A stretch of 64,000 nt of DNA from Phaeosaccion multiseriatum (taxonomy: Eukaryota; Protista; Ochrophyta, other classes). The translations under genes and the position numbers were made by a program. Positions 6,849 to 60,420 of the stretch are shown here, piece by piece (the first letter of the stretch is position 1; every line of letters starts with the position of its first letter). The stretch spans positions 2,418,001 through 2,482,000 of the forward strand of contig OZ218951.1 of assembly GCA_965112735.1 (NCBI GenBank). Direction: 5' to 3'. The notes below the pieces were generated by a model. That model did not search any database, was not told where the DNA came from, and saw only the letters and a program-made list of their open reading frames with translations.

Positions 6849-9800
6849 TCTCCTCCCCCAGGCTATCCTCTTCTTCCAAAACGAAGTTCACTTCGCGTAA
6901 CCTCAGCCAGCAGCTCAAGGCGCAAGGCGAGAAGTGAGTCCAAGGGGAGGGAGGGAGGGGAGGGGGGGGGGGGAGTGGACGGCGGCGGTGGTCTCTTCCC
7001 TCTTGTCTCACTCACTCCATTCCATGAATAATCTCTTCCCTCTTGCTTTACTCATTCCACACTCCTACCTACACCTCGTACATCTCACGTTTTTCGTCCC
7101 TTCTTTGCCCCTCCTCCTGCGCGCACACATGGCTCCCTCCCGCCAATTTTGCCCCCCTCCCCCCCCCGTCCCCTTCTGCCCCCCTTTTCCTCCCTCTTTC
7201 CGGCTCACTCTCTCACTCACTCACTTCACTTCACTCGCTCACTTCGCTTCACTCGCTCGAGCACAGGGATAGGAGCCGATTCACCCAAAAGTTTAATCAG
7301 ACTGGAGGCGGAGGGCTGGGTGGGCGGCTGCTGGTGCTCAATTCCACAAAGTCTTCGGCTTCTGCTGCCCCCCTTGTCTCCAACTCTTCCTCTGTTGCGG
7401 CGCTTTCATCTTCCTCCTCGTCCTTGGCAGCAAAGAGAGGAGATGGAGCAGTGGGTGCGTTGGCCTCGTCCTCAGGTAGCGGTTCAGCAGGAGGAGCAGG
7501 TGCGGCAATAGGAGGAGGAGGAGGAGTGGGAGCTGGGGGCTCAGCATCGGCAAGTGGTGACAGTAGGAGCGGCGCGCTCGGCACAGGCACTGGCAATAGT
7601 GGGGGGGCAGCAGAGCTATCCTCTGCCTCAGCAGCGGATCAACAACCCGCCAAGCCAGCGGTGTGGGGGGCCAAGGTAAAGGGCGTAGACGAAAAGGCCA
7701 ATGAAAAGAAGGAGACCAACACAGTGCCGGCGTGGGGCCAGCTGGTTACTCGCAGCGGGCATGGAGGATGGGGTAGCGATGACGACGACGCGGATGAATC
7801 CGACGGGAATGGGAGGAGTGGACCTGCCCAACAGCAGGAGCAGCAGCAGGAGCAGCAGCAGCAGCAACAGCAGCAGTCATATGGGCAGCAGCAGCATCAT
7901 CAGCAATCGTATGGGCACGAGAGTCAGGACTTTCGGGGTGGGCGTGACGGAGGCCCAGGGGGGCGCCATGGAGGATTCGGGCCAATGGGGTATGATCGAG
8001 GGGGAGGCCCAGGGGGGTTTGGCGGTGGCGGCGGTGGTGGCAGGGGGCATCTTCAACACGCGACGAATGGACCAATTGGGGCCGGCAGGGGAGGAGGGTA
8101 CGGCGGCCCTGGAGATGGAAGAGGGACGGCAGGAGATGGAAGAGGAGGAGATCGATTCGGGTTCGGGGCGCGACGGACAGTGGGAGGGGGCGACTCGTAC
8201 CAGCAGCAGCAGCAGCACCAGCAGGGGTCTGGTGGTTCCTTTCAGGGGCAGGGAGGGGGAGGCAGAGGAGGGGGTGCTAGAGACGGTTACGGGGGAGGAA
8301 TGGGCATGGACAACAGAGGAGGAATGGGTATGGACAACAGAGGAGGTGGAGGCTTGCGTGATCGAATGGATAGCGGAGGAGGAGGAGGGTTCGGCGGGAG
8401 GAGAGACTTTGGTGGGCTACCTGGGCCGGAGGGAAACTGGAGAAAGCGACCCACGCCCACGCCAACTACTCCTTCTTCTTTCTCCTCCGCGGACGGAGGA
8501 GGACAGTCGGGAGGAGGTGCGGGACCCTCAGGAGGAGGTGGTGGTGGTGGTGGTGGAGGAGGAGGAGGAGCGCAAGGACCTGGTACGGGTGCGGGTGCGG
8601 GACCCCCCGGCGGCTGGAACGGTCCAGGGCGGGGTGGGGGAGGTGGGATGGCAGGAGATGGCAAAGAAGGAGGAGAGGACCTGCCGCGAGTGTCGTCAGA
8701 CCCCTACGCTCGCCACGGAGCAGTGGGGGGTCATCGGGAGCGGGCCGCTGGCGAGAATTGGCGCGGAGGAGGGGGGGGGGGTGGAGGGATGGGAGGATCG
8801 GTTCTCGGTGGGAGCGCCGTCAGTAGAAGGGGGGGCAGCTTTGATGGTACTGCTGGTGGTGGGGGTGGCGGTGGTGGCAGGTCCTCTCGGGACCCGATTG
8901 CGTCGTACCGAGTACCGGCCCTGGGCGAGGAAGGGAAAGGAAGCGGAGAGGGGAGGGGAGGAGGTGAAGCAGCAGGAGGAGGAGAATCAGCACCACCACG
9001 AGCAGCAACAGCTGCAGAAGGATCCGCGGCACCTGGGGAAGGACGAGGAGCGAGAGACCCTTACAAGACTGATACTTTGGAGCAGCCTCAGCAGCAGCAG
9101 CGACATCAGCCACCTCGGGCGTTTGATCCGTACAGAGAGGCGTCACCAGAAGGAAGAGGAGGAGGAGGAGGAGGAGGAGGAGGAGAGAGCAGTGGTGAGG
9201 CGACCAAGTCGAGAATCGCCCCATTGCGGGATCCCTACGCGGAATCCCAATCTTCTTCATCAGCCCCTAAAGAGCAACCGGTGCGCCATCCTGTTGCGCG
9301 GGATCCCTATGCCGAAGCGGAAACAATCACAGCCTCCAAGGAGACAGCCCCTGGCCCCACACGAGATGAGGCAACGACATTAGGTCAACAGGACAGGGAC
9401 CCGTACTCGAGGGGCAGAGGCAGTGACCCGTATGAGCAACAGCAGCAGCATCATCAGCAGCAGCAGCATCAGCATCATCATCATCATCATCATCAGGCAC
9501 CGTCGCCTCAGCGTGTCGTGGATCCATACGCAGCAGTGGGTAGTCGGAGTGAGGGAGAAGACCACCAGCATCAGCAGCAGCAACGGCCATACTCCACCCA
9601 CGCTCCTCATGCGATAGACCCGTATGCCCCCCAGCAGCAGCAGCAGCAGCATAGCAGGGAGGGAGGAGGAGGAGGAGGAGGAGGAGGAGGAGGAGGAGGA
9701 GGAGGAGGAGGAGATTTCCGGGCGGGTGTGGATGGAAGGTACGGAGGTAGGGGCTTTGGGGGGTTCGGCAACACCGGTCAACAGCCACAACAGCGACAAC

Positions 9801-11850
9801 TTGGCTCCTTTGGAGGGGGTGGGAATGGCGTTGTATCCAGCGGCATGAGAGGTATGGCAGCAGTGGGGGGCGAGAGGGACAGGCCCAGAGGAGACAGGGA
9901 CCCAGCAGCAGCACCAGGAGCAGCGCCGCTCTTTCGAGGGGGGCGATCCGGGTCCGGTGCTAGTGGGGACTGGGAGCGAGGTCAGACGCTGCCACTTAAC
10001 AGTCACAGTCAAAAGCCGGTGGGGGCGAGGCAGCAGGACGGAGGAGGGGGCAGAGGAGGAGGAGGAGGAGGGGAGGTGGGAGGTGTGTATCCCGGTGGGC
10101 ACGACGGACGGGACTTTCATGGTGGCAGTGGCCATGGTGGGGGTCGCTTCGGGGGACAGGGGCCAGCGACGACGCACCACCAACCGCATCACCACCACGC
10201 CCACTTCTTGCAGGGAGGGGGTGGTCCTAACCACCACCAGCATCAGCAGCACCCACATCAGCTATACGACCACCGCAACAATGCCATGGTTACAGTGCAG
10301 CAGCAACAGCAGCAACAGCAGCAGCAGCAGCAGCAGCAGTTGGGAATGCAACAGCAGCAGCAAGGAGGAGGAGGTGCGAATAGCCCGGGCCCCTCCCCTC
10401 AGCTTCAACCTCATGCCCTCGCCCCGGGGGGGGTGCCTGTACCTCCGTCTCCCATCACATCCATGCTAAGGAGAGGAGACGTGAAGATCATGAAGAGGAG
10501 ACCCTTCACTGCGACTACCGAGGGCGAGGAGGGGGGTGAAGGTGACGCTCAGTGCGCCTCTCCGGAGGGCGGCGATGAAGGGGAGAATCAGGATGATGGC
10601 GGTGTTGGTGTGGCTGAGACTGGGGCGGTGGCAGTGGCGGGAGGTACCAACCAAGAGCAGCAGAAGCAGCAGCAGCAACAGCAACAGCAGCAGCAGCAGC
10701 AGCAGCAGCAACAGCAGTACCACCACCACCACCAGCAGCAGCAGCAGCAGCAGCAGCACCACCACCACCACCACCACAAGGCGGCCGTGGACAGGTCAAT
10801 GGAGGCACAAGGAGGAGGGCAGGAGGAGCCGCGCCATTACGCACAGCAGCAGCAGCAGCAGCAGTTGGTGATACAGCAGCAGCAGCACGCCCAAAAGCAA
10901 CGCCAGCAACAGTACGGTGACAATCAGCGTCAGCCGCTGGTGGTGCAGCAGCAGCAAGCGGCTTCTGGCAAGAAGACGAGACCCCGCCCCTCCAAACCTC
11001 GCACGCAGGGACTGCTCTTCGCCTTTGCCCCGGACGGGAGGATAATCGACGCGGACCGACCGAACTCGAGCGATGCGGAAATTGAAGCTCGCCTTGGTCT
11101 CCCAAGCCAACAACAGCAGTTGGTGGTACAGCAGCAGCAGCAGCAGCAGCACCAGCACCAGCACCAGCACCAGCACCAGCACCAGCGCTCATCCTCTCAC
11201 CATCCTCAGTCTGTTGGGGGCCCGGCTGCTCCGGGTGCCCAAGGAGGCATGGTTGGAGGTGGAGCTGGGCCTGGGAGAGGTGGCGGAGGGTCGAGGGGCG
11301 GGAGAGGAGGGAGCACCGCAAGGGGTGGGAGAGGGGGGCGGGGGGGAAGAGGAGAGGGAGGAGGAAGGGGGGGGCAAAGGCAGCAACAGCAGCAGCAGGG
11401 GGTGAGTGTGCAGGCCGAGCCTCAGCCCCAGCCACAAGCCCCGCCCCCAAGCCCACCAGCGAAGCCAAAGCCCAAGCCCACTAGTTGGAAGGCGGCTGTT
11501 ACAGGAGTGGCTCCTCCTCCTCCTCCTCCGGCGCCGGCTCCGACGCCGGCGGTGGCCACTCCACTCCATACTGCTACTGCTACTGCTGCTGCTGCCCCTA
11601 CTGGGCAAGGCCAAGGCCAAGGGCAAACAGGACAGTCTAGGATTAGACCTGTGACTACCTCCGCCGTTGGTGGGGGCCAGGCTGTGCCTGTCGGTGCTGC
11701 TCGGCCACTGGCCGCCGTCGGATTTCAAGGACATTCGCACCCTGTAAGCACAAGCACGAGCACCCCGCAGGCACCTCTCGGGGCAGGGGCCTTGCTGCAG
11801 CAGCAGCAGCAGCAGCAGCAGGGGCAGCAGCAGGAGAGACTGATTCAGGC

Positions 11851-11883
<33 letters not shown>

Positions 11884-12139
11884 CCTCGTGTATCAGCAAA
11901 ATCTCAAGTTGCAGCGGGAGAGGGCGTTGCAGCAGCAACAGCAGCAACAGCCGCAACAGCAGCCGCAGCAGCAGCAGCAGCAACAGCAGTTGGTGGTACA
12001 GCAGCAGCCACGGATGCAAGTGCAGGTGCCGAATGAAAAGCAGGTGCAGCAGCCGCTCCTGTCACCCACGCAGCAGCTACCCCCACAGCAGCAGGCTCAG
12101 CTCAGGCAGCTTAGAGAGCAGAGACAGCTTCAGTATCAG

Positions 12140-12173
<34 letters not shown>

Positions 12174-12307
12174 TGGTGGTACAGCAGCAGTTTCAGCAGC
12201 AGCAGCAACAGCAGCAACAGCAGCAGCAGCAACAGCCTCCACAGGCGAGATCGCAGCAACAGCAGATGCAGCAGATGCAGCAGATGCAGCAACAGCAGCT
12301 TCGGAAC

Positions 12308-12342
<35 letters not shown>

Positions 12343-13331
12343 GCCAAGGGGACCACCCCAGAGGAGGCCTCAGCCGCCGCTACAGCAGCAGCAGCCACAA
12401 CCACAGCAGCACAAGATGCAGCAAGCTCCGCAGCAGCAAGCTCCGCAGCAACAAGCTCAGCAGCATCAGCGCCCCCAACAGAGGCGGCCACAGCCACAGC
12501 AACGGCAGATGCAGCAGACTCGACAACAGCAACAGCAACAACCCCGACAGCTGCCGCAGGCGCCAGCAACGGCAACGGCAGCGGCTGCGGTCCCTTTCGG
12601 GGGTGCCTCACAGCCTTTACAGCCGTTACAGCCGTTACCAGCACAGCAGCAGGTGGTACAACAGCAGCAGCCGCAGCAGCAGCAGCCGCCGCCGCAACAG
12701 CAACAGGTGGTACAACAGCAGCAGCCACAGCAGCAGCAGCATGCAGCGAAGAAGGGCAAGAGGGCCACAGAGAAGCCGCGCCGAGGAGGCAAGGATGGAG
12801 CGCCCCTTGCGACGAGTGGCAGCGGCAATGGAGGAGGAGGCGTTAGTGGCAGCGGCAATGGAGGAGGAGGCGTTGCGACGAGTGGCAGCGGCAATGGAGG
12901 AGGAGGCGTTAGTGGCAGCGGCAATGGAGGAGGAGGCGTTAGTGGCAGCGGCAATGGAGGAGGAGGCGTTGCCCGTGGTGCCGTGGCTGCAGGGGCGCCC
13001 CTCCCGCCTTCTGTTGGCGAGGCAGGAGCATCCAAAACCGCCAATGGTAAGGGGGTTGCAGGAGGGAAGGGTCCCAAAAAGCAGCAAGTGCGGCAGCAGC
13101 AGCAGCAGCAGCAGCGGCAGCGGCAGTACACGGAAGGTGCGGCACCTGCCAGCGGCGGTCAAGTGAGGGAAGGAGTCGTCGACAACGACAAACGCCGACC
13201 TCACACTCCTCACACTGCCCCTTCAACGTCAGCCCCTCCGTCCTCACGCGGCGGCAAGGGAGGGGGAGGAGGAGGGGGGAGAGGGCCCAAGAAGGCCCAG
13301 CAGCAGGGGCAGCAGCAGGGGCAGCAGCAGG

Positions 13332-13378
<47 letters not shown>

Positions 13379-13627
13379 AAGCAACAGGGTAAGCAGCAAG
13401 AGGGTGTGCCTTCCGGACCAGTACAGCAACCGCCGAGACCAAATGGGACGGCGAATGGTGAAAAGACATCCCGTAGCTCGGTGGGGGGGGGCAGGGGTGG
13501 TGCCGGCAACAGCAGCAGCAGCAGCGGTGGCAGGGGGGGCAAGTCGAGTGGCAGCAGTAGGGGAAGAGGGGGGAAAGCGAGGCCTAGGCGGGCAGTGGTC
13601 GCAGCCGAGGGAGGGGCGGGCAAGTAG
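6275..13627 (+). CDS. Very large low-complexity RGG/polyQ protein with a BAT2/PRRC2(MOS1)-like N-terminal motif
   Basis: Exons 6275-6313, 6524-6933 and 7267-13627 join in frame at GT-AG sites, and the last exon is a 6.3-kb open frame. The N-terminal KFTSRNLSQQLK...GGRLLVL resembles the BAT2_N-type K(F/Y)xxxNL...GGxxVL pattern; this family call is tentative. RGG boxes, GNWR/GDWER motifs and long Q tracts follow. Confidence 0.7.
12811..12970 (+). repeat. Coding minisatellite, 5 copies of (AT)SGSGNGGGGV (30/36-nt units)
   Basis: AGTGGCAGCGGCAATGGAGGAGGAGGCGTT is repeated five times with identical nucleotides. Confidence 0.9.
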
Positions 13628-48454: not shown

Positions 48455-50769
48455 CAGCGGGAGGGAGCGCCTCTGAAGCCTCGCCGTGTGACTTCTGCTT
48501 CGGGGTGGGGGTACCCTGTCGGGCGGAGACAGTGTCTTCCTCCCCCTCTTCCCCCTCCTCCTCCTCCTCCTCCTCCTCCTCCTCCTCCCGGCAGCTTCTA
48601 CGAAGATCCACCCGCTTCTTCACGCCATGCCCCACTCCTGTTCTTTCCTCCGGAAGCTCCTCTTCCTCCTCCTGCTCCCCCTTACCCATGCCACACTGCC
48701 TCTCGACTGCCTTCCTCTCCTGCAGCGCGAGGGAGAGCCCCACCAGAGGAGGCGGCAGAAGCGACGTCTTCCCCCCCTTCCTCGAAGCCGCGCTGCTACT
48801 GGCTGCCGCTGCTGTCTCTCCTTCCTCTCCTCCTTCAGCAGCAGCATCAGCAGCAGCAGCGGTAAGGGGCCATGGCGAGGGAAACAAAGCCGCCAGGGAG
48901 GCTCCTATCGCCGCATCCAGGAGCTCCTCCACAGTGCCCGACCCGGACAACGGGACCACCTTCGAGCTACCTCCCTTGACACATGCCATGCGGCCGCTGC
49001 CGCCCCTTCTTCTCCTACTGCCACTTCCGCTTCTGCTGCTAGTGGTGGTTGTCGTCTCATCGCCGCTCGCCTCCCGGCTTTCCTCACGCATTCTACCACT
49101 GTTGCGAGCCTTCGCATCTGCCCTCTTCCTCACCCCTCCATCCTCTTCCTCTTCCTCCTCTTCCGCGAAACGCAAATGCAAGGCCAAGCTGCTGCTCCCC
49201 TCTCTGTCTCTGCTGTCATCGTCCGGCCTCTTGCGCTTCCTCCCGCCGCTGCCGGAGGAGCAGGCACTGGTCCCTGCTGACTCTTCTTCTCCCTCGAGTA
49301 GAGGGCCAACATATGATTTCTGCTGCTGTATCACCAACTCCTGAGGCTTGTGAGGGTGAGCAAGCAGGAGAGACCGCCCCTCCCTTCGCACGTAAGACTG
49401 CACCACTGAGAGCTCTTCGCAGGGCCGGACAATCACAACTCGGTCTTGCTGCTGCTGCTGCTCCTGTCCCCGCTCCTGCTGCTGCTGTTGCCGCTCCTGC
49501 TGATGGGGGCTGCCGTGCCCACTGTGACTCTGAAGGGAGCGGCGGAGCTCGCACAAGTGGCGCTCAGAGGCCATTCTGACGGCAGCGCGCGAAGACATGA
49601 GGGTGGAGGTGAGGGTGAGGGGAAGTGAGGGTGAGGGAGAGGTGGGGTGAGAAGAGGCAGGGCTTCAGGCTGGAAGCATGAGCGGACAGAAGCAGGCATG
49701 AGGATGCCTACAAGGCTGGCAGAGAGGCGGAGACGCGGGGAGGGTGTGAAGCGCCGGTAGAGAGAGGGAAGAAGTGACGCGAAGGTCTGGTTGAGGAGGA
49801 GGGAAGAGGGGTAGAGAAAGAGAGGAATCGTACGTGTGTGTACATGTGCATGTATTGCCACCATACCAGCACCGACCTCGCCAGCAGCGGAGTCCTCGCC
49901 ACGACGACTCCGCAGTCGTATCCAAGGGTGTCGTTGAGAGTTGTCTGCATCACGCGAGCGAGGGAGGCGCCCCCTTCCATCAGGGCTTCTAGTCTCGCTA
50001 GACGCGCGCAGTGGCGGGGGGTCTCTTCCTCTTGCTTGCTTTTGTCCCCGTTGTCGAGGATGGGTTCCGTCCGGCGCCGACAGTTGGCGCCTCCGCTGTT
50101 GTGACTGCTGCTACTCCCGCCGCTGTTAGTATTGTTGTTGTTGTTGTTGCTATCGCTACTCGCACCACCGCCTCTACTACTCCTGGACGGTGCATCGCGA
50201 AGGCTGCCCGCCATCCGAAGCAGCCAGTCTTCCGGCGGCTGGAGGAAGACGTCACATCTCTCTGCCCCAGCCCCTGCTGCTGCTGGCTGTTCTCGTCCCG
50301 CCTCTCCCTCGTTCTCCACCCACAATTTCCCCGCAGGCGGGCAAAAGCCCCTCAATAGGGCACACACCGTGCTGCGAGCAGAGCTGATCGCCTGTGGCGT
50401 GATGTGCCACGACGTTGAGATGCTGTCTCTTCTGACGAGGCCAAGACCCGCAGCCTCCGCTTGGTCATGTGGTGGCTGCAGCAGCGTGTGTTTGTGTGAG
50501 TGTGTCTTCAACACCTTTACACAGGGAAATGCGTCGGTCAATGCTCTGATCGTTGTCCTCTCGCTCACCCCAATGGCCCGTGCCTCCTTGCTGACTCCCG
50601 TTATCAGGAGGTCACCGCCATCCCTGTCGGAGGTAAGAGAGCTCGGTGTGGACGAAGCCGTGACCAAGGGTAAGCCTCTGAGACTGGGGACAGCGTTGCG
50701 CAGGACCTGCACCCTGAAGGGCTCCAACCAATGCAGGGAGACAAGGAGGACGATGCTTCCATCATCCAT
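47724..50769 (-). CDS. Y-family DNA polymerase-like (IMS-fold) protein, apparently catalytically degenerate, with a C-terminal C2H2/UBZ-like finger
   Basis: Exon 1 (50769-49877) carries IVLLVSLHWLEPFRVQV...PSLRGLPLV...ITGVSKEARAIGV...AFPCVKVL and LGYDCGVVVARTPLLAR. It joins exon 2 (from 49575) to give LLARMASE, matching the LLAKxAS consensus. The finger is KCRVCK-x8-DEHQRTH. Confidence 0.7.
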
Positions 50770-51155: not shown

Positions 51156-54100
51156 ATGGATCGTGGTGGACGAGGAGGGGACGATGCCCTGGGAGGAGTG
51201 ACGCCCGGGGAGACAGCAGCAGGCAGAGGAGGGGATGGCCGGAAGACGAAGCCCCTCCTCCTCCCCCGCCACGCCAAGAATGGAAATGAAGGTTCCAGGG
51301 CCGACGAAGGCTTAGTTCCAATGGGGGGGGTGACGCAAGTCTTGTGGGAGCGAGACTCTCCAGCAGGCGACGAAAAGGAAGAACAACGAGGAGGAATCGA
51401 CGAAGGAGTCGCGGCCTCTTCTTCTCTCGCTCCTCTACTGAGGAGGGCTCACGAGGCTGTTGCTGACCTCGGCGACAAGCCCTTTGCCTTTTGGTACGAT
51501 GGCAAAGGCAAAGAGGCGGAGAGGTACAGCTTCGGACGCATGTGGGATGAGGTAAGCAAAGCAACGAAGAAACATCATTCCGTGGAGGTGTTGATGCCCT
51601 TGCTTGCTCTCTCATGCCGTTTCAGCTGCTGCTGGTGGCGTGCTGTAGTCTTGCACATTACGCCCCAACGGCACTCCTAGACTCTGTGATAATTAGCCCA
51701 AGATGCAAACGTTGCTTCGCTCTTCCAACCCTTCTTCTTGCTTCCGCAGGCGGGCAAGATCTCCTACATGCTGCGCGAGGAGTGGGGCGTGCCCAAGGGA
51801 ACCATGGTGGTGCTGTGCTACGGGCCGGGGTTGCACTTCTTCGCCGCCTTCCTGGGCTGCTTGAGAGCGGGCGTGGTGGCGGTGATGGTGTACCCGCCTG
51901 CTCCTCCGCTGTCCAAGTCGCTCCCAAAGATGAGCAGGATCGTGGCGGACTGCAAGCCTATGCTGTGCCTCACCGACTCCATCATCGCAACTTTGCGCAA
52001 TATGGACAAGGTCAATCCACTCTCGGACTCCCGCAAGCTGTGGCCTGATGACCTCGACTTTAAGGCTACAGATGGGGGGCTGTTCCAGAGCTTCTTCTCC
52101 TCCTCATCGTCCTCCTCGTCAGCAAGGAGTTTCGATGAGCTGAGCATGGCCGAAGAGGACCTGGCCTTCCTCCAGTACACCAGCGGCTCCACCGGTGACC
52201 CCAAGGGCGTGATGGTGACCTTCGGTGCGCTCATGGCCAACGTGCACCTCCTGACCAGCCACCGAACAGGCATGATCAAGTGGGCCCGGCGAGAGAAGAA
52301 GGATAACCATTGGGCTGATTATGAGGCACCTGTTGACCATGCACCTCGAGGGGCTGGTCAGGGAGGGTCGAGCGTTGCCGGTCAGGAAGTGATCACCTTG
52401 CCGTTGACCGGCTTCTCGTGGCTGCCTCAATACCATGTGAGTGAGGGCGTTGACTGACCGACTGACTTGACTGAAGACGTGAGTAAGTGCGTGAGCGAGT
52501 GAGTGGGTAGGTGAATGAGTGCGTGAGGGAGTGTGTGAGTGCGTGAGGGAGGGAGAGAGGAAATCAGCGAGTGAGAGAGGGATTGAGTGACTCGGTGAGC
52601 GAGCGAGGGAGTGAGTGCGAGATGAGTGAGGCTGAGCACGGCCGAGAGAGAGAGACCAAGGGGGGGGGGGAAGGGTCCATCACTTGACTTTGGTTCGGCA
52701 ATGATGGAGCGGGGCGTCGTTCGTTTTCCTCGCATCTGAAGCAAGAGCATGATCTGACACCAGCCTCGCCGCTGTGATGCTCACTGACTGTCCCCACGCC
52801 TCTCTGTACCGCAGGATATGGGCCTTGTCGTGGGCCTTGTGGGCCCCTTCCTGACGGGTATGACTATGCATTATATGTCCCCCGTCAGCTTCATCAAGCG
52901 GCCCCTGCTCTGGCTGGAGCTCGTATCCAGGCACCGCGTGGACTGGTCCATTGCCCCCGACTTCGCCTACGCCCTCTGCGCCCGCTACATGGCGAAGGTG
53001 CGCGGTACTCGCAAGGAGCCCATGCTGGACTTGTCCAATGTGGTGTCCTTGTGCAGCTCAGCCGAGCCGATTCGGAGAGAGACCATTGAGAGGTTCGAAG
53101 AAGCGTTCCGTCCCCATGGCCTCCCAGACAGGTATGAGGGTGCAGAGCCTAGGCGGGCACTGTGTGACTCTTACCATGAGAACCCTTCCGTAGTACCTGG
53201 CTGCTCGTCAGTTCTATCTTCTTTCCCCACTCTCTGCTTGTCGCGGCTCGAGAGGGTGAAATTCTCTCTCCCTGGTTAAACTGCGCCCGACCTATGCTAT
53301 CCCTGACACTCCTGTCACCTCCTTCGCTCAGGTGGTTCTCGTCGGCCTACGGCTTAGCTGAGCATGTGGTTCTAGGTACGTAATCTGCCGGCCGATTCGG
53401 GGTGGCTGGCGAGGTGGCCACGACGCTCGACCCTCGCTTCCATAATTCTTCTTATTCTGTCTTACGTCCCTCGCTTCCTTGTTGGGTGGTGCACAGCTTG
53501 CTCGATCGACTCTATGCACAGATCCACGGCGAGACCAGAACTGACCAGCGTCGGCTCACCGAGCGAGAGGGCAGACTTTATGGACATTCGAATCGTCAAT
53601 CCCGGCACCATGGGCGAGGTCAGCGGAGCAGCAGCCACAGGAGAGATCTGGATCTCCTCCCCCTCTGTCGCCGCCGGGTACCGGGGCAAGCCCGAGCTGT
53701 CGGAGGAGACGTTCGGTGCCAGACTCACCCTCCCCGATGGTGATGGCATCTCGCGTCGCCGCCGGTACCTGCGGACGGGGGACCTTGGCTTTGCGGAGGA
53801 GGGGCTGCTGTACATCTGCGGCCGCATCAAGGACGTCATCATCCTCAACGGGGTCAACCACTACCCGCAGGACGTCGAGTTCACCGTGCAAGAGGCGTCT
53901 GACGCTGTTCGGCAGGGCTGCATTGCGGCCTTCTCCTCCGACGAGACGGGAGGGGACGGCGTGCTGGAGGTGGTGTTCGAGGTCCGGCAGGAGCGAGAGG
54001 GCGAGGCCCAGGCAGTGGTGGAGGCCGCTCAAGCCGCCATATCGTCTTCTTTTGGCCGTCGGGCGGCCAAGGTGGTGGCCATAAAACAGAAGACCGTCCC

Positions 54101-57100
54101 CAAGACCACGAGCGGCAAGATCCGACGGCGGGCAACACGGCAGGCCCTTCACGCTGGCGGCCTGCAAATTGTCCATGAGCTCTGTGAGGACATCGCAAGT
54201 ATGCACGACGGGGCGGCTGATGCCTCCGTTGGTAGCAATAGCACGCGAGCGCCGAGGACATCAAAAACGGTTGGCCGGAGCAGCAGCGACGGGGGCGAAG
54301 AGCAGCCGAGCCCAATACATGAAGAGAGTGGTGTGCCCGGGATGGCCGCCATGGAGGCGATGGGCAAGGCTGCTCGAGTGACGCTCATCCTCGAACGAGT
54401 TGTCGAGTCTGCCAGAGACGCGTCCGGCAACCCCGGCCTGCGGCCCACGGACCGCTTCATGGACGCAGGTCTCTCGTCCGTTGCGATGGCCGAGCTGGCG
54501 GTGACGCTGGAGGACTTTGTGGATAGCAGCATGGGGGGGGAAGGGGGCTTTGAGATGGAGACCACAACCTTCTTTGATTTCCCCACACCTGCGCTGCTGG
54601 CAGCACATCTCGAGGAAGCGCTCTTTGGGCGTGGAGAGAGAAGCGCGCGGGGCTCTGCGTCTTCGCTTCCCGTCCCTCCGCTGCCTGAGCCTGCAGCTGC
54701 CGACGGGGACATTGTGATAGTTGCAATGTCGTGCCGCTTCCCAGGGGGCTGCAACAGCCCGGAAGAGCTCTGGGCCACGCTGTGCGCCGAGCAGGACTGC
54801 GTCTCTGAAGCGCCGGTCGAGCGAGGGTTGGGGCCCGGCATCCAAGGTGAGAGAGGGGCTTTTGCTTTCCCACCTGCCTGCCCACCACCGCTCGGCGCTC
54901 CTCCTCGACACTGAAGGGGCGTGATTCTTCTCCCCCTCTCATCTCCATCACCTTCTCCATGTCCCTCTCTTTTTCCCTCTCCTTCTCTTCTTGAAAAGGT
55001 GGCTTTATCGATGGGGTTGACATGTTCGACAACGCCCTCTTCGGCATCTCTGAGGCGGAAGCGGAAGCACTCGACCCCAGTCAGCGCATCATGCTGGAGA
55101 CTGCCTACGAGGCCCTTTACAGGGCGGGCTTCGACCAAGGGCTGGAGAGTCTGCATGGCCTGGATATCGGGGTATTCATTGGCAAGTCCGGAGCAGGAGA
55201 GTGGAGCATGCTTCAGCAGGAGAGGGGCGCAAAGCAAAGCGCATACTCCCTCGTCGGGGCAAGCACCGCGTGCGTGGCGGGGCGCGTATCGCACACCTTG
55301 GGCCTCACGGGCACTTGTTTCACCATAGACGCGGGATGCCCTTCCGCCATTGTCGCACTTGACACAGCTTGCAACACTCTCATGTTGGGTAAATGCAGCA
55401 TGGCTGTGGTCGGGGGCGTGAACCTTCTGCAGCACCGCCAGACTTTCGGAGCACTCGACAAGGCAGGATTTCTGTCGAAGTACGGGTGAGTTTGACCTTC
55501 ACCTTGCCACAATTTTCAAACAAAAAGGCGCTTTCCCCTTACCTGAGTACCTCACCTCACTCGACCCCGTCCCGATCTCCCGTCAGACGCTGCAAATCCT
55601 TCGATGTCAATGCGGACGGATACGTCCGAGCCGAGGGTTGCGGAGCGGTGGTGCTGAAGCGCTCGGTGGATGCGAAGCGCGATGGCGACCGCATCCTTGC
55701 CACCATCAAGGCGGCAGCGGTGAACCACAATGGGGTCAGCAGCTCCCTGTCCGCCCCGAAAGGCGTGGCGCAGCAGAGCGTGGCTGCTGCGGCTCTCTCA
55801 CGCGCAGGCTACAGGGGCAGCGACGTGTCCTACGTAGAGGCGCACGCTACGGCCACCCCCACGGGAGACGCCATCGAGATGGGTAAGGAGTCAGGGATAC
55901 AGCTTGTGATACGGCTTCCTGGAGGGCCTGCTGCATTGCCGGCCCTTGCGATCCTCTTTGCTCGTTGTCGTGGAGTAAGCTACGTAACGGAGCTGTTGCC
56001 ACTGAAATAGGTACTAAAGAGCGCCCCCCTCCCACCTCCTCTCCCCTCCCATCCGCTGCGTTGCACAGGCGCTCTGAAGGCCGTGTATGCAGGCGGTCGC
56101 CCCCCTCAGTCTCCTCTGGTGGTGGGCACCGTCAAGACAACCCTGGGCCACATGGAGGGAGCCTCGGGTATGGCGCAGCTCATCAAGGCCATCTTGGTGC
56201 TCCAGCATGGGGCAGCGCCTCCCAACCTTCACCTCAAGGAGGTCAATCCAATGCTGAAGCTCGAGGGGCTGCCCGTCGTTCTTCCCACGCAGATGACTGC
56301 GTTGGCGGCATGCTGCGGTGACGGGGGGGAGAGCTTGCTGGTTGTGGGCGTCCACTCCTTTGGGTTGGGTGGATTCAACGGCCACATCATTTTAGAGGGG
56401 CGACAGCAGAACCCCTCCACGGCTTCCATCACGCGGCAGGAAAAGGCCTGGGGAGGATTTCAGACGCAGCAATCTTTCCCGCTCCCCCATCATGCTCTGG
56501 GCGCTGCTGGTGCGGCTGCTACGAAGCGTCTCGGCGCACCGGGGCAACTAAACGAGCTGCAAGCAATGACACCCTCGGAGAGAGAGGCGTCCGTGAGGCA
56601 AATCGTGAGGGCTGCCGTAGAGAGCATCTGCAGCGCCCCAGAGGTTGCCACAGACCCAAATGTGAACGTTCTTGAGGCGCTGGGACACGACTCCATCGCA
56701 ATCGCAGAGGTGGTGACGCGAGTGATCGACGCTATTGAGGGAGACCAAGACGATGAGGAGCATGCGGCTGGTGAGGGCGAGAGCCTTCGATCCGTCATCA
56801 CTCCTGCAACCCTCTTTGACATGCCAACCGTGGATGCATTTTCGAGCTTCGTCAGCGAGGCGTGCCTGACGCACGGGGACACTGCTGGCGCGGATCATGC
56901 ACATGAGACGCGTTCCTCGAGCTGGGCAGTGAGGAATTCTGATCGGGAGTGGCAGGCCTCCGACGCACACATGCCCGCGGAGTGCAAGGCCGAATTGGGC
57001 TACACAGCTCTCAAGCTGGTGACTGTGGCAGCGGCTCAGATACTGGGCCTACTCGCTGTTGTGTTTGTCGCTTCTGTGCTGCTGAGCAAGGTCCCCTTGA

Positions 57101-60100
57101 GCGTCTCGAGCCTTGTCTCTGGCTTTCCGGTGCTGAACGCCTTCCAGGTACGGCAATACTCTGCAGTGTTGGTGGCGGAAAGGGGGAGTTGGAGGCAGAC
57201 TGGAGCAAGGGATCACCGCGCACATGCGATCTGGCCGTCTCTGGCGAGGCTCTCATACGCTTCCGTCGCCCCTCTTTTTGCCTGCTCGGGGCGATGAAGT
57301 TTTGCCGACGATAACACTCCTTGCTCCTCCCGCCCTCGCTGTCGCGCTCTCTCTCTCTCTCTCTCTCTCTTATGTACCACTGTAGACGTTGAAGCTACTC
57401 GAGTTCCAAGAAGATTTGACGCGAGCGGCGACTGCGGAGATCCTCGGACGAAACCCTCTCTTCCAGAACGAGTATCTTAACATTGTGCTCAGCGGCGTGC
57501 TCGGTGCAGCAGGCTTCTTGCTCGTCGCAATGCTCTCCGCACCTCTGGTCAAGTGGGGGGTGGTGGGCCGCTACAAAGCAGGGGTGGTCAAGGTGTACAG
57601 TTTGTACCATTTGCGCTGGTAAGCATGCGTGCTGTGGTCATCCATCATCACATTTGGCTGTGTCCTTCCCCTGGTAGTATGGTGTGAGCTTCGCAGGGGC
57701 GTGGCCATAATGTCAAGCCTCGACACCTGACAGTGCTCTTCTATGTTCCGCCCCATTCATTTTGATCACAGCTGGCTGGTGGACCTCTACCTTGACTACT
57801 TCTTCTACCCCGTAGTCTCCTTGCTCGTCCGGGATTCCGTCGTGCTGGTCCCACTCTATCGTCTCATGGGAGCGCAGATCGGCCGCGGAACGGACTTGAC
57901 AGGGGTGAGTTCTGGGCTTAGACGACATTCTTTCCTTCTCCGCTTTCTTGCTCGTTTCAAGTCCGCACTCACCAGCCACCACACCTCCTGATGCTCTCCT
58001 TTGCCACCCCACAGGTGCGCCTGAGTGAGTTTGATCTCGTCAGTATCGGCGAGAACTGCTCTATTGACCGCCGGGCCATCATCACTCCCAAGTCCCACAT
58101 CGGAGGCATGAGGCTTCAGTACGAAAAGGTGCAGTTAACTTCATTTTGTGTTGGTGTGTGTGCGCTCCTGAACATGGAACGAGGCCCGCTGTTCAAGAAA
58201 CCTGTTGCACTGCCAATCACCAACATCAGTCGTCTGTGCCATTCTCGTTCTTGCTTAATACCGCAGGTCGTCATCGGCTCAAACTGCGAACTGGGAATGG
58301 GAAGTGTCGTGCACGGGGGAAGCGAGCTTGAGGATGGCGTGCGTCTTCACGTGAGAGCAACTGTGCCTCCCGGTACCCGACTCGCAGGCCCTCGAGCGTA
58401 CCAAGGCAGCCCGGCGACGGTGGTGCCAAGAAGGAGTATGCCCGCGCCTGTTGTGCCGGTGGACCAGTGGATGTCGCTGAAGAAAGGTGCCTTCTTCTCA
58501 TTCTTTGCCGGGCTCGCGGTGCTTCCAGGAGCGGTAGCTTCAATCGCGATTCACCTCAACGCTTCCAACGGAATCAGCGCAGGTGCGTGCATCTGCTTGC
58601 ACGATTTTTCTGTTCTTTTTGTCAGTACCAGCCACCGCCGGTATTGCTCCCCCCCCGCCCCCCTTCTGATGCGCGCTTTCCCTCTCCGCATGCTTTTCTC
58701 CTCTTCAGGGCGATACACCGGGATTTTGCTGCTCTTCCTTTATGTGTCGCTGATTAATGTGAGTACAAAAAGAGGGGAGATGCGAACTATACGCGACAAA
58801 CCACGCACGCGCCCTTCACTTACTACTACCTGCCTCCCTTTCTCTCCTTCCTCTTTGCTCGCACAAGGTCGTAACCGTTTGCTCCACCATTTTGCTGAAA
58901 TGGGTGCTTGTGGGGAAGCTGAGGCGAGGCGTTATCGTGGCAGACATGGGAGACTGGGCGGTCCTCTGCAGGGAGACTGCCAATCGCCTCAACGGACTGG
59001 CCGAGCTGATTCTTGTCCGCTTCTTTCATTTTGCAGAGGGTGCTGTGATGTACTACAGACTGCTCGGAGCATCCATTCACCACACCGCCATACTCGGAGG
59101 CGCTGTTGTCTTGTCTGACCCAGACACGATTGACATGAAGGCGTTGTCTTTCATAGGCGGGGCCGGGGCTCTCTTGACAGAAACCTCCGATGGTGTGCTT
59201 GAAGGATGCACGCTTGAACGAGGAGCTACCGTCGGTGACATGGGCATTGTAGGCGCGGGGAGTCGCCTGGAGCCGCTGGCGTTGTTAACGTCCAGATCTT
59301 GGCTCGGCGAACGAACGGTGATGCCGACGAATTCCACCGCGACGGGAATTCCCGCCGGGATTGTTGTTGCACCCTCCTCCACTGGGGGGAAGAAGGCTGG
59401 AGACGGCGCCAACAGGCTTCAGAAGGCCCCGAGAGGCCGTGCATTGAACCTCGTTCCAGGCACCAAGTTTCTTGTCCAGATCGTGGTCATGTTTGCGCAT
59501 TTGCTTCGCCTTTTCGGAGGCGCTGTTCTTGCCTATGAGTTCCTCGACCTCTTCCAAGAGCCAATCGATGAATGGTACGGCGCGAGGGGCCTTGGAAGCA
59601 GCATTGCCACCACACTGCGGGACGTGTGGACGAGATTCGACACGCAGACGCTCCTTCTCCCCGTGGCCTACCTCCTCTACCTAGCGGGAGGCCTCCTGCC
59701 GTCGCTTGTTGTGAAGGTCAGTGCGATGCTGCAGTGGCTCTGCCGGTCTACCCTTTGTTGTTATGTATGTACTATCTCTCTCTCTCTCGTGAAAAGAGTT
59801 GCCTGGTGGGGCCTGTACTTCGGCCCCTGTACTTCACCCCCTACCCACTCGCCCGTCAAACCCTCCCTCTCTTCTGCCCACGGCGTCATATGCAGAGGCT
59901 CTTTGGAATGTTTCCAGAAGGATCCATGAATTCGTCAGGCAGGGAGGGTCTGTGCTACATTGCAACATTAGTGTTCGACATCATGGGGAGGTCGCTAACC
60001 TCCTGGATGTGGGGAACTCCTCTCTGGCCGGCCTATCTGAACCTCCAGGGGGCGAAAGTGAGCACTTCAAGCTATATCGAGACACATGCCATGTTTGACC

Positions 60101-60420
60101 CCAGCTTCCTCACCGTAGGGGATGGGGTCACTATTGCCAAAGGAGCGTGTCTCTGTCCTCACACAGTTCAGCGTAACGAGACCGAATTGCTGCCCATCCG
60201 CGTTGGCCATTCTGTTGTTCTGGGCGTAATGGTGGGGAGTAGTGTTGTGAAGCCTGAGACCATTGTTGGTGACAACTCGCGTCCAGGCAGGGGTCAGGTT
60301 CTTCGCCCCCCCCGCTCGTCTGGTGGTTCCGTGGGCCATGCTGAAAAAAGGGAGGGCACATGGCACTTCGCGGGGGTGCCCGTGAAGCCCTTCAAGGCGA
60401 CGCCTTACGGAGATTGCTGA
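51156..60420 (+). CDS. Megasynthase: fatty acyl-AMP ligase - ACP - ketosynthase - ACP - Pls/PosA-type membrane/left-handed beta-helix terminal region
   Basis: Fifteen in-frame exons. FAAL: AFLQYTSGSTGDPKGVMV, SWLPQYHDMGLV, APDFAY, AYGLAE, YLRTGDLG, GRIKDVII, VPKTTSGKIRR. ACP1: FMDAGLSS. KS: MSCRFPGG, LDPSQR, DAGCPS, GYVRAEG, EAHAT, KTTLGHMEGASG, HSFGLGGFNGH. ACP2: LGHDSI. Three TM + hexapeptide repeats: KWGVVGRY...YRLMGAQIG, KWVLVGK...YRLLGASI, GTPLWPAYLNLQGAKV. Confidence 0.92.

Follow-up and report, generated by a model that had tools for sequence, protein, structure and literature searches.

A predicted gene of Phaeosaccion multiseriatum joining a fatty acyl-AMP ligase, two acyl carriers and a ketosynthase to a Pls-type membrane terminal region

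The gene model and the domains of its predicted product

The stretch of DNA analysed here (hereafter the window) comprises 64,000 nucleotides of the ochrophyte alga Phaeosaccion multiseriatum and is eukaryotic in character, with about 58% GC and many short introns. Between positions 51156 and 60420 of its + strand, 13 stop-free stretches with recognisable coding sequence were joined into a gene model, called here model A, which runs from an ATG at 51156 to a stop codon at 60418-60420 through 15 exons and 14 GT..AG introns (101-378 nt) and comprises 2,280 codons plus the stop, with no internal stop codon. The single spliced frame claimed for this interval by an initial annotation, made from the letters of the DNA, was thus borne out. 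The predicted protein carries, in this order, a fatty acyl-AMP ligase (FAAL), a first acyl carrier protein domain (ACP1), a ketosynthase (KS), a second carrier (ACP2) and three repeats, each made of two transmembrane (TM) helices followed by a left-handed beta-helix (LbH). The coordinates of the exons and of these features are as follows.

51156-51551, 51750-52436, 52815-53131, 53332-53375 and 53497-54846, + strand: exons 1-5 of model A, by splice prediction
54999-55485, 55587-55882, 56069-57147, 57467-57618 and 57772-57904, + strand: exons 6-10 of model A, by splice prediction
58015-58128, 58267-58582, 58709-58758, 58868-59764 and 59896-60420, + strand: exons 11-15 of model A, by splice prediction
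56069-57147, + strand: exon 8, inside the stop-free stretch 56011-57294, holding the KS C-terminus, ACP2 and the first TM helix (TM1)
51441-54182, + strand: FAAL-type adenylation domain, residues about 96-710, with 4 introns inside
52179, 53348 and 54102, + strand: FAAL motifs TSGSTGDPKG, YGLAE and KTTSGK, respectively, read in the sequence
54396-54611, + strand: ACP1, attachment Ser809 (GLSS) at 54477-54479; match to PP-binding at 28.7 bits, E 1.6e-6
54705-56397, + strand: KS of the type I polyketide synthase (PKS) kind, residues 885-1302, with 3 introns
55337-55339, 55843-55845 and 56149-56151, + strand: KS catalytic residues Cys1045 (DAGC), His1180 (EAH) and His1220 (GH), respectively, read in the sequence
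56602-56901, + strand: ACP2, attachment Ser1401 (GHDS) at 56692-56694; a divergent carrier with an acidic insertion
57004-58446, + strand: terminal repeat 1 (TM1, TM2, LbH1), with the motifs KWxxxGRxKxG, RxW, LMGAQIG and QGSPA; the best-conserved repeat
58486-59371, + strand: terminal repeat 2 (TM3, TM4, LbH2), from matches to TIGR02353 and to a hidden Markov model (HMM), and from hydropathy
59450-60417, + strand: terminal repeat 3 (TM5, TM6, LbH3), matching TIGR02353 with E 3.7e-10 at profile positions 579-671
60160-60162, + strand: His2195, at the position of the invariant repeat-3 His of the Pls family
55511-55570, no strand assigned: 58-bp presence/absence polymorphism inside intron 6 (55486-55586)

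Several lines of evidence bear on the splicing of model A. The borders of the KS exons were confirmed independently by tblastn with an unrelated KS protein (P0105), the FAAL part is collinear with plant FAAL domains in a BLASTP-type alignment, and the intron donors are mostly GTAAG, GTGAG or GTACG. Two junctions have alternatives, both of them in frame (acceptor 57385 or 57466; donor/acceptor pair 59721/59917 or 59765/59895), and model A gave a slightly better score with the Pls-type HMM described below than the alternative versions did. Two of the 14 predicted introns, ending at 54998 and 58867, have an AAG acceptor instead of CAG or TAG; either such acceptors are tolerated by the organism or these two junctions are in doubt. 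A further intron in the 45-aa insertion of the FAAL (52270-52400) was considered and rejected, as no credible in-frame GT..AG pair was found there. Since the end of the KS, ACP2 and TM1 all lie in exon 8, the fusion of PKS and membrane domains rests on no splice; the alignment to the Pls-type HMM itself begins at residue 1506, within this exon. Upstream of the ATG, a divergent gene with a match to the Pfam family impB/mucB/samB (IMS) starts at 50769, which leaves no space for additional 5' exons.

Four read runs cover the locus, and their even depth across the introns together with variants at about 50% identify them as DNA; a further query for RNA libraries alone listed no runs. The joint of the 58-bp polymorphism was present in all four, at about 35-50% of the local depth, and its position is consistent with the non-coding status of intron 6. 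A CT-rich simple repeat occupies 57331-57378, within intron 8.

Regarding the loader, the region matches the Pfam families AMP-binding and AMP-dom_DIP2-like, and its top NCBIfam models are the FAAL families PRK05850, PRK12476 and FadD32. The C-terminal piece of the domain scored 140-141 bits with NCBIfam FAAL families, compared to about 65 bits with models of fatty acyl-CoA ligases (FACL). The best solved structures in the PDB were likewise FAALs (95-127 bits, led by a PKS loading FAAL at 127 bits and followed by FadD32, FadD23 and others), against 33 bits for the FACL FadD13. By models and structures, the loader is closer to FAALs than to acyl-CoA ligases or to amino-acid adenylation (A) domains. 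Mycobacterial FAALs have a CoA-blocking insertion longer than the stretch of about 33-35 residues that separates YGLAE from IRIV here, a spacing that is equal in the plant relatives. As judged from the sequence, the direct fusion of ACP1 3' of the FAAL would fit a hand-over of the acyl chain from the ligase to the carrier. ACP2 ends ~35 residues before TM1, within the same exon.

The KS matches the Pfam families ketoacyl-synt (E 4.8e-43) and Ketoacyl-synt_C. Its best NCBIfam models are the type I PKS model NF045894 and then Pks13, the latter with E values of 1.7e-35, 3.5e-30 and 5.3e-18 on the three KS pieces. The Lys preceding His1220 is kept, and only about 70 aa link the KS to ACP2. The FAAL, the two carriers with their serines and the KS with its three catalytic residues, all listed in the initial annotation, are therefore supported by Pfam and NCBIfam matches, borderline in the case of ACP2, as well as by motifs. 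Also in agreement with it, no acyltransferase (AT), ketoreductase (KR), dehydratase (DH), thioesterase (TE) or condensation (C) domain was matched in the predicted protein by Pfam or NCBIfam models, nor was an enoylreductase (ER).

Hydropathy analysis placed six hydrophobic helices in the terminal region, arranged as three pairs with a beta-helix after each pair. The three unspliced terminal pieces all match TIGR02353, the family of the bacterial Pls/PosA synthetases, weakly, at 19.9, 17.9 and 38.8 bits for a curated cut-off of 423.1. A local Pls-type HMM was built from 75 retrieved Pls-type terminal regions. Five retrieved proteins (P0006, P0007, P0008, P0014 and P0001) were checked against TIGR02353 and all matched, four of the five above the cut-off; P0001 (201 bits) fell below it and was left out of the HMM set. 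With the local HMM, the spliced protein scored 196 bits over three domains and the four checked TIGR02353 members 810-1076 bits, and the spliced protein would probably fall below the TIGR02353 cut-off. Repeat 1 by itself scored 123 bits (HMM positions 16-331) and matched Hexapep with E 2.7e-8. BLASTP aligned residues about 1570-2250 collinearly with the terminal domain of TIGR02353 proteins along its full length; the alignments span 660-720 aa, with 22-28% identity. These alignments support a true homology of the predicted terminal region to the bacterial Pls/PosA terminal domain over all three repeats. The Pls-type nature of the C-terminus, on which the initial annotation had staked its claim, thus stood, with the collinear BLASTP alignment and the HMM match in its favour.

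An AlphaFold model of the exon 58868-59764 shows a short beta-helix between long helices, with a mean pLDDT (the per-residue confidence of the model) of 82 and values >90 over the first 170 residues, which form a helix and the beta-helix. Foldseek searches with this model returned serine, maltose and perosamine acetyltransferases and gamma-carbonic anhydrases; no solved structure of any Pls-type terminal domain was found in the PDB. The three TM and hexapeptide repeats initially described were accordingly recovered as six paired helices, with the LbH fold modelled for repeat 2.

Elsewhere in the window, a 2,194-codon open frame at 7043-13627 (+ strand) has no Pfam match, a local GC of 0.63-0.64 and a strong positive GC and AT skew, and is probably a low-complexity or repeat protein.

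Relatives in land plants and in bacteria

A family of ~2,300-aa proteins in land plants has the order amine-oxidase-like domain, FAAL, ACP, ACP and Pls-type end, with a catalase-like insert. It spans bryophytes, lycophytes, ferns, gymnosperms and angiosperms, from liverworts to grasses and eudicots, with examples in Marchantia (P0022), Selaginella (P0108), Adiantum (P0012), Cryptomeria (P0005), rice, tomato and poplar; the retrieved entries of the family are P0012, P0005, P0017-P0024 and P0106-P0215. The N-terminal amine-oxidase-like domain and the catalase-like insert are usual, not universal. Its members are annotated only as hypothetical, uncharacterised or 'Carrier domain-containing' proteins or are mis-named 4CL, and literature searches found no paper on this FAAL-ACP-ACP-Pls-type family.

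The architecture of the Phaeosaccion protein is less isolated than the initial annotation supposed. A KS was found in none of about 215 retrieved relatives, but the pairing of a FAAL with a Pls-type end recurs across land plants. Literature searches returned no characterised enzyme and no paper with a FAAL-ACP-KS-ACP-Pls-type fusion, in agreement with the initial annotation, to which no characterised enzyme of this order was known. On the sequences compared, the modules are known ones and their combination is new, with KS-less, uncharacterised cousins in land plants.

An exhaustive HMMER library search with the repeat-2 piece returned 15 distant matches, including fern and conifer FAAL/two-carrier/Pls-type proteins, with neither a self-match nor a close relative; repeat 1 would have made a more suitable query. 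The exon encoding KS, ACP2 and TM1, used in a word-index search, gave a single match, to an unrelated KS, and a metagenome scan for relatives gave no match. Searches by profile and by region that started from the fern protein yielded proteins from plants and bacteria alone, and a KS was present in none of these. In the tree of terminal domains, the window sequence forms a very long branch outside the bacterial core and the land-plant clades, with an unsure placement.

Its nearest neighbour in this tree, P0011, was examined as a possible KS protein and rejected, being a C-A-T-Pls-type non-ribosomal peptide synthetase (NRPS; T denotes the carrier domain). P0011 appears to be the 3' part of such an NRPS, split by an intron or by a miscalled gene border; it lies on a eukaryote-like contig (L001, 2872-8340) beside genes for HSP90 and bestrophin. 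Other contexts of the terminal domain among the retrieved proteins are A-T, A-T-C-A-T, C-A-T and T-terminal-AT. The metagenome proteins P0075, P0053 and P0091 have a T domain, the terminal region and then an AT of the Acyl_transf_1 type, another unreported module context.

Proposed function and alternative explanations

The domain inventory and the homologies are observed, and from them we infer each of the chemical steps proposed here. We give about an even chance to the view that this single nuclear gene encodes a 2,280-aa membrane-anchored, one-step hybrid lipid synthase that is served by an AT in trans and transfers a 3-oxoacyl chain to an acceptor. The FAAL would adenylate a free fatty acid and load it onto ACP1, from which the acyl chain would move to Cys1045 of the KS. 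ACP2 would be malonylated by a free-standing acyltransferase encoded elsewhere, and one decarboxylative Claisen condensation would yield a 3-oxoacyl-ACP2 two carbons longer. This thioester would be the acyl donor for the three LbH domains, which would be held at the membrane by the six helices and would probably form an intramolecular pseudo-trimer. A free amine or hydroxyl would then accept the 3-oxoacyl chain from the LbH module, in the way that Pls joins its lysyl-S-T donor to free lysine or an oligomer, and the 3-oxoacyl conjugate would be released and possibly exported. Overall, the enzyme would join an initiation module of acyl ligase (AL), ACP and KS, of the iturin type and resembling FadD32/Pks13, to a Pls-type off-loading module in the place of a TE.

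A number of observations weigh against this proposal. The gene model is predicted, and the reads at the locus are of DNA type in four of the four runs. The PP-binding match of ACP2 is borderline, its 20.4 bits being 0.4 below the Pfam gathering cut-off of 20.8, and the KS motif that follows His1180 reads HATAT where HGTGT is the norm. In tblastn, three AT-bearing proteins had no AT match anywhere in the 64-kb window, in agreement with the initial annotation, so that the supply of the malonyl extender is an assumption; algal PKSs without an AT that are served in trans are, nevertheless, the rule (PMC4661987; PKZILLA preprint). Among the 99 columns conserved (>=85%) in bacterial Pls-type domains, 43 are identical in the predicted protein and 56 are changed, and the catalytic competence of the terminal region and the nature of its acceptor are accordingly predictions. 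The land-plant relatives, which pair a FAAL with a Pls-type end and have no KS, indicate that an extension step is not needed for this pairing. Finally, searches outside this genome, whose queries were pieces and never the full spliced protein, yielded no ortholog of the same architecture, and the absence of orthologs is for this reason weakly established.

The alternative that survives best, though we consider it unlikely, is that the enzyme is a true polymerase. It would start from a bifunctional fatty acid (omega- or mid-chain hydroxylated, or amino), and the Pls-type end would join ACP2-bound units to a free chain, yielding a surface polyester or polyamide. The characterised Pls members are indeed iterative polymerases whose chain is never enzyme-bound (PMC9205021), the layout of three repeats and six TM helices is fully kept, and the plant relatives carry domains of fatty-acid-modifying type (an amine-oxidase/PAI-like flavoenzyme and a catalase-like domain). 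However, the gene encodes neither a hydroxylase nor an aminotransferase, there is no sign of a bifunctional substrate, and most of the polymerase-invariant residues are replaced. In repeat 3, QTHLFEDR has become CPHTVQRN, with the loss of E, D and R and with His2195 as the only residue kept, and in repeat 2 F.GN has become T.GD. Two points rank a single transfer above polymerisation: a 3-oxoacyl chain brings no nucleophile of its own, and most residues conserved in the polymerases are gone, over half of the invariant ones being replaced. For the same reasons, the polymerisation at the membrane that the initial annotation put forward beside a transfer is disfavoured. The algal wall or surface lipid polymer that it named as a possible product is graded here as pure speculation.

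Below polymerisation, and also unlikely, stands the possibility that the KS does not elongate. It would be inactive or serve only to shuttle or gate the acyl chain on its way from ACP1 to ACP2, and an unextended fatty acyl chain would be transferred, as presumably happens in the KS-less plant proteins. Such a role would agree with the two ACPs and the lack of a KS in these relatives, with the lack of an AT in cis or in the window, and with the atypical HATAT motif. Against it, the two histidines that decarboxylative condensation requires are present, as is the Lys ahead of the second one. Non-elongating KS domains (KS0) of trans-AT PKSs usually have no first His, whereas His1180 is kept here. 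KS0 modules are mentioned in the PKZILLA preprint.

It is improbable that the single-gene model is an artefact covering two transcripts, or that the gene is an unexpressed or decaying paralog. This explanation would account for the fact that the protein and close orthologs of it were absent from both large protein libraries searched and for the very long branch of the terminal domain; moreover, the model was predicted from the genomic sequence and includes the two AAG acceptors and the two ambiguous junctions. On the other hand, no stop or frameshift interrupts 6.8 kb of exons, a single exon holds KS, ACP2 and TM1 without a break, every catalytic residue is kept and the variants are biased to synonymous sites. 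In the DNA runs, 16 variants are synonymous and 18 non-synonymous, giving a ratio of non-synonymous to synonymous polymorphism per site (pN/pS) of roughly 0.37, a weak hint of constraint on the predicted gene. This estimate is itself compromised, because the variants are clustered and oddly rare in introns: clusters of 8 variants per ~100 bp occur at 55161-55241 and 59519-59620 (contigs, runs X3 and X4), and the introns (1.55 kb) hold only 2 of the 36 listed variants. The clusters look like a divergent haplotype or an exon-mapping paralog and not like ordinary heterozygosity.

A head-to-head condensase of the Pks13 kind, in which the KS would condense the loaded chain with a carboxylated long acyl on ACP2 to a branched 3-oxo acid for transfer by the membrane domain to a carrier molecule, is the least probable of all, for although Pks13 is the second-best NCBIfam match of the KS, FadD32-type FAALs rank high among the structural matches and the logic of a FAAL followed by ACP-KS-ACP and a transferase is parallel, neither an AT nor an acyl-CoA carboxylase context was found and the generic type I PKS model scored above Pks13 on every KS piece.

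Taken together, the feature described in the initial annotation is real and was correctly described, and its interpretation is partly supported, by the domain order, the residues, the absence of an AT in cis and the Pls homology. Beyond the one-step synthase proposed above, the alga might use the Pls-type membrane module as a general release or export device for fatty-acid-primed polyketide lines, of which land plants would keep a KS-less version, with 3-oxoacyl units here being joined together or attached to a wall or surface acceptor. We hold this wider view to be unlikely, to the same degree as the polymerase; if true, an extracellular lipid polymer or conjugate similar in kind to algaenan or cutin would be made by a route not yet described. 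In Phaeosaccion the Pls-type module stands behind a fatty-acid loader and a KS, and similar modules stand behind FAALs across land plants. If these proteins are active, the module would serve generally to off-load acyl thioesters at membranes, and eukaryotes would possess an entire class of lipid or polyketide conjugates or polymers with no known chemistry as yet. With 2,280 aa and one module, the Phaeosaccion protein is small enough to serve as an experimental entry point to this class.

Comparison with known systems

To our knowledge, the only function known for Pls-type membrane domains is the polymerisation of basic amino acids supplied by an A-T pair. In Pls, lysine is activated and bound to the T domain, after which the three tandem domains link it to freely diffusible lysine or to an oligomer that is never enzyme-bound (PMC9205021, PMC8117764). 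The Phaeosaccion protein shares with the Pls/PosA NRPSs (TIGR02353) a carrier directly before three tandem LbH domains and six TM helices, and the lack of a C or TE domain (PMC8117764, PMC9205021). It has kept the RxW, GAxIG and W/YxGSPA motifs and the repeat-3 His. By contrast, the Pls/PosA loader is an amino-acid A domain with AMP-binding_C, whereas here the donor would be supplied by FAAL-ACP-KS-ACP; in addition, the terminal region is only 22-28% identical to its Pls/PosA counterparts and the protein lies outside the bacterial clade in the terminal-domain tree.

The land-plant family is similar to the Phaeosaccion protein in its FAAL (33-36% identity over about 600 aa), in its two carriers and in its Pls-type end, which scores 185-297 bits on the local HMM, a range that includes the algal value. 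The plant proteins differ in having no KS and in carrying flavoenzyme (amine-oxidase-like) and catalase-like domains, both absent from this gene, and their terminal domains form a clade of their own (100/100) that excludes the window sequence.

A link to the alkenones of haptophytes, by way of a 3-oxoacyl chain turned into a methyl ketone, was also considered, and nothing was found in its support.

In the FadD32/Pks13 system, the FAAL loads the N-terminal ACP, the KS condenses the chain with a unit on the second ACP and the product is passed to an acceptor; the TE of Pks13 passes the mycolate to trehalose. The likeness lies in this FAAL, ACP, KS, ACP logic, and the models of both proteins are among the best matches of the predicted protein. 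Nevertheless, FadD32 is a separate protein and Pks13 (ACP-KS-AT-ACP-TE) has its own AT and its own TE as transferase, whereas in Phaeosaccion AT and TE are absent and membrane LbH domains stand instead.

The initiation module of the iturin family, MycA, offers a parallel for the steps proposed up to the 3-oxoacyl thioester. It consists of an acyl ligase, an ACP and a KS and works with the trans-AT FenF, the second carrier being malonylated in trans to give a 3-oxoacyl thioester. MycA continues to an aminotransferase and NRPS modules, whereas in the Phaeosaccion enzyme the 3-oxoacyl thioester would go straight to a Pls-type membrane module.

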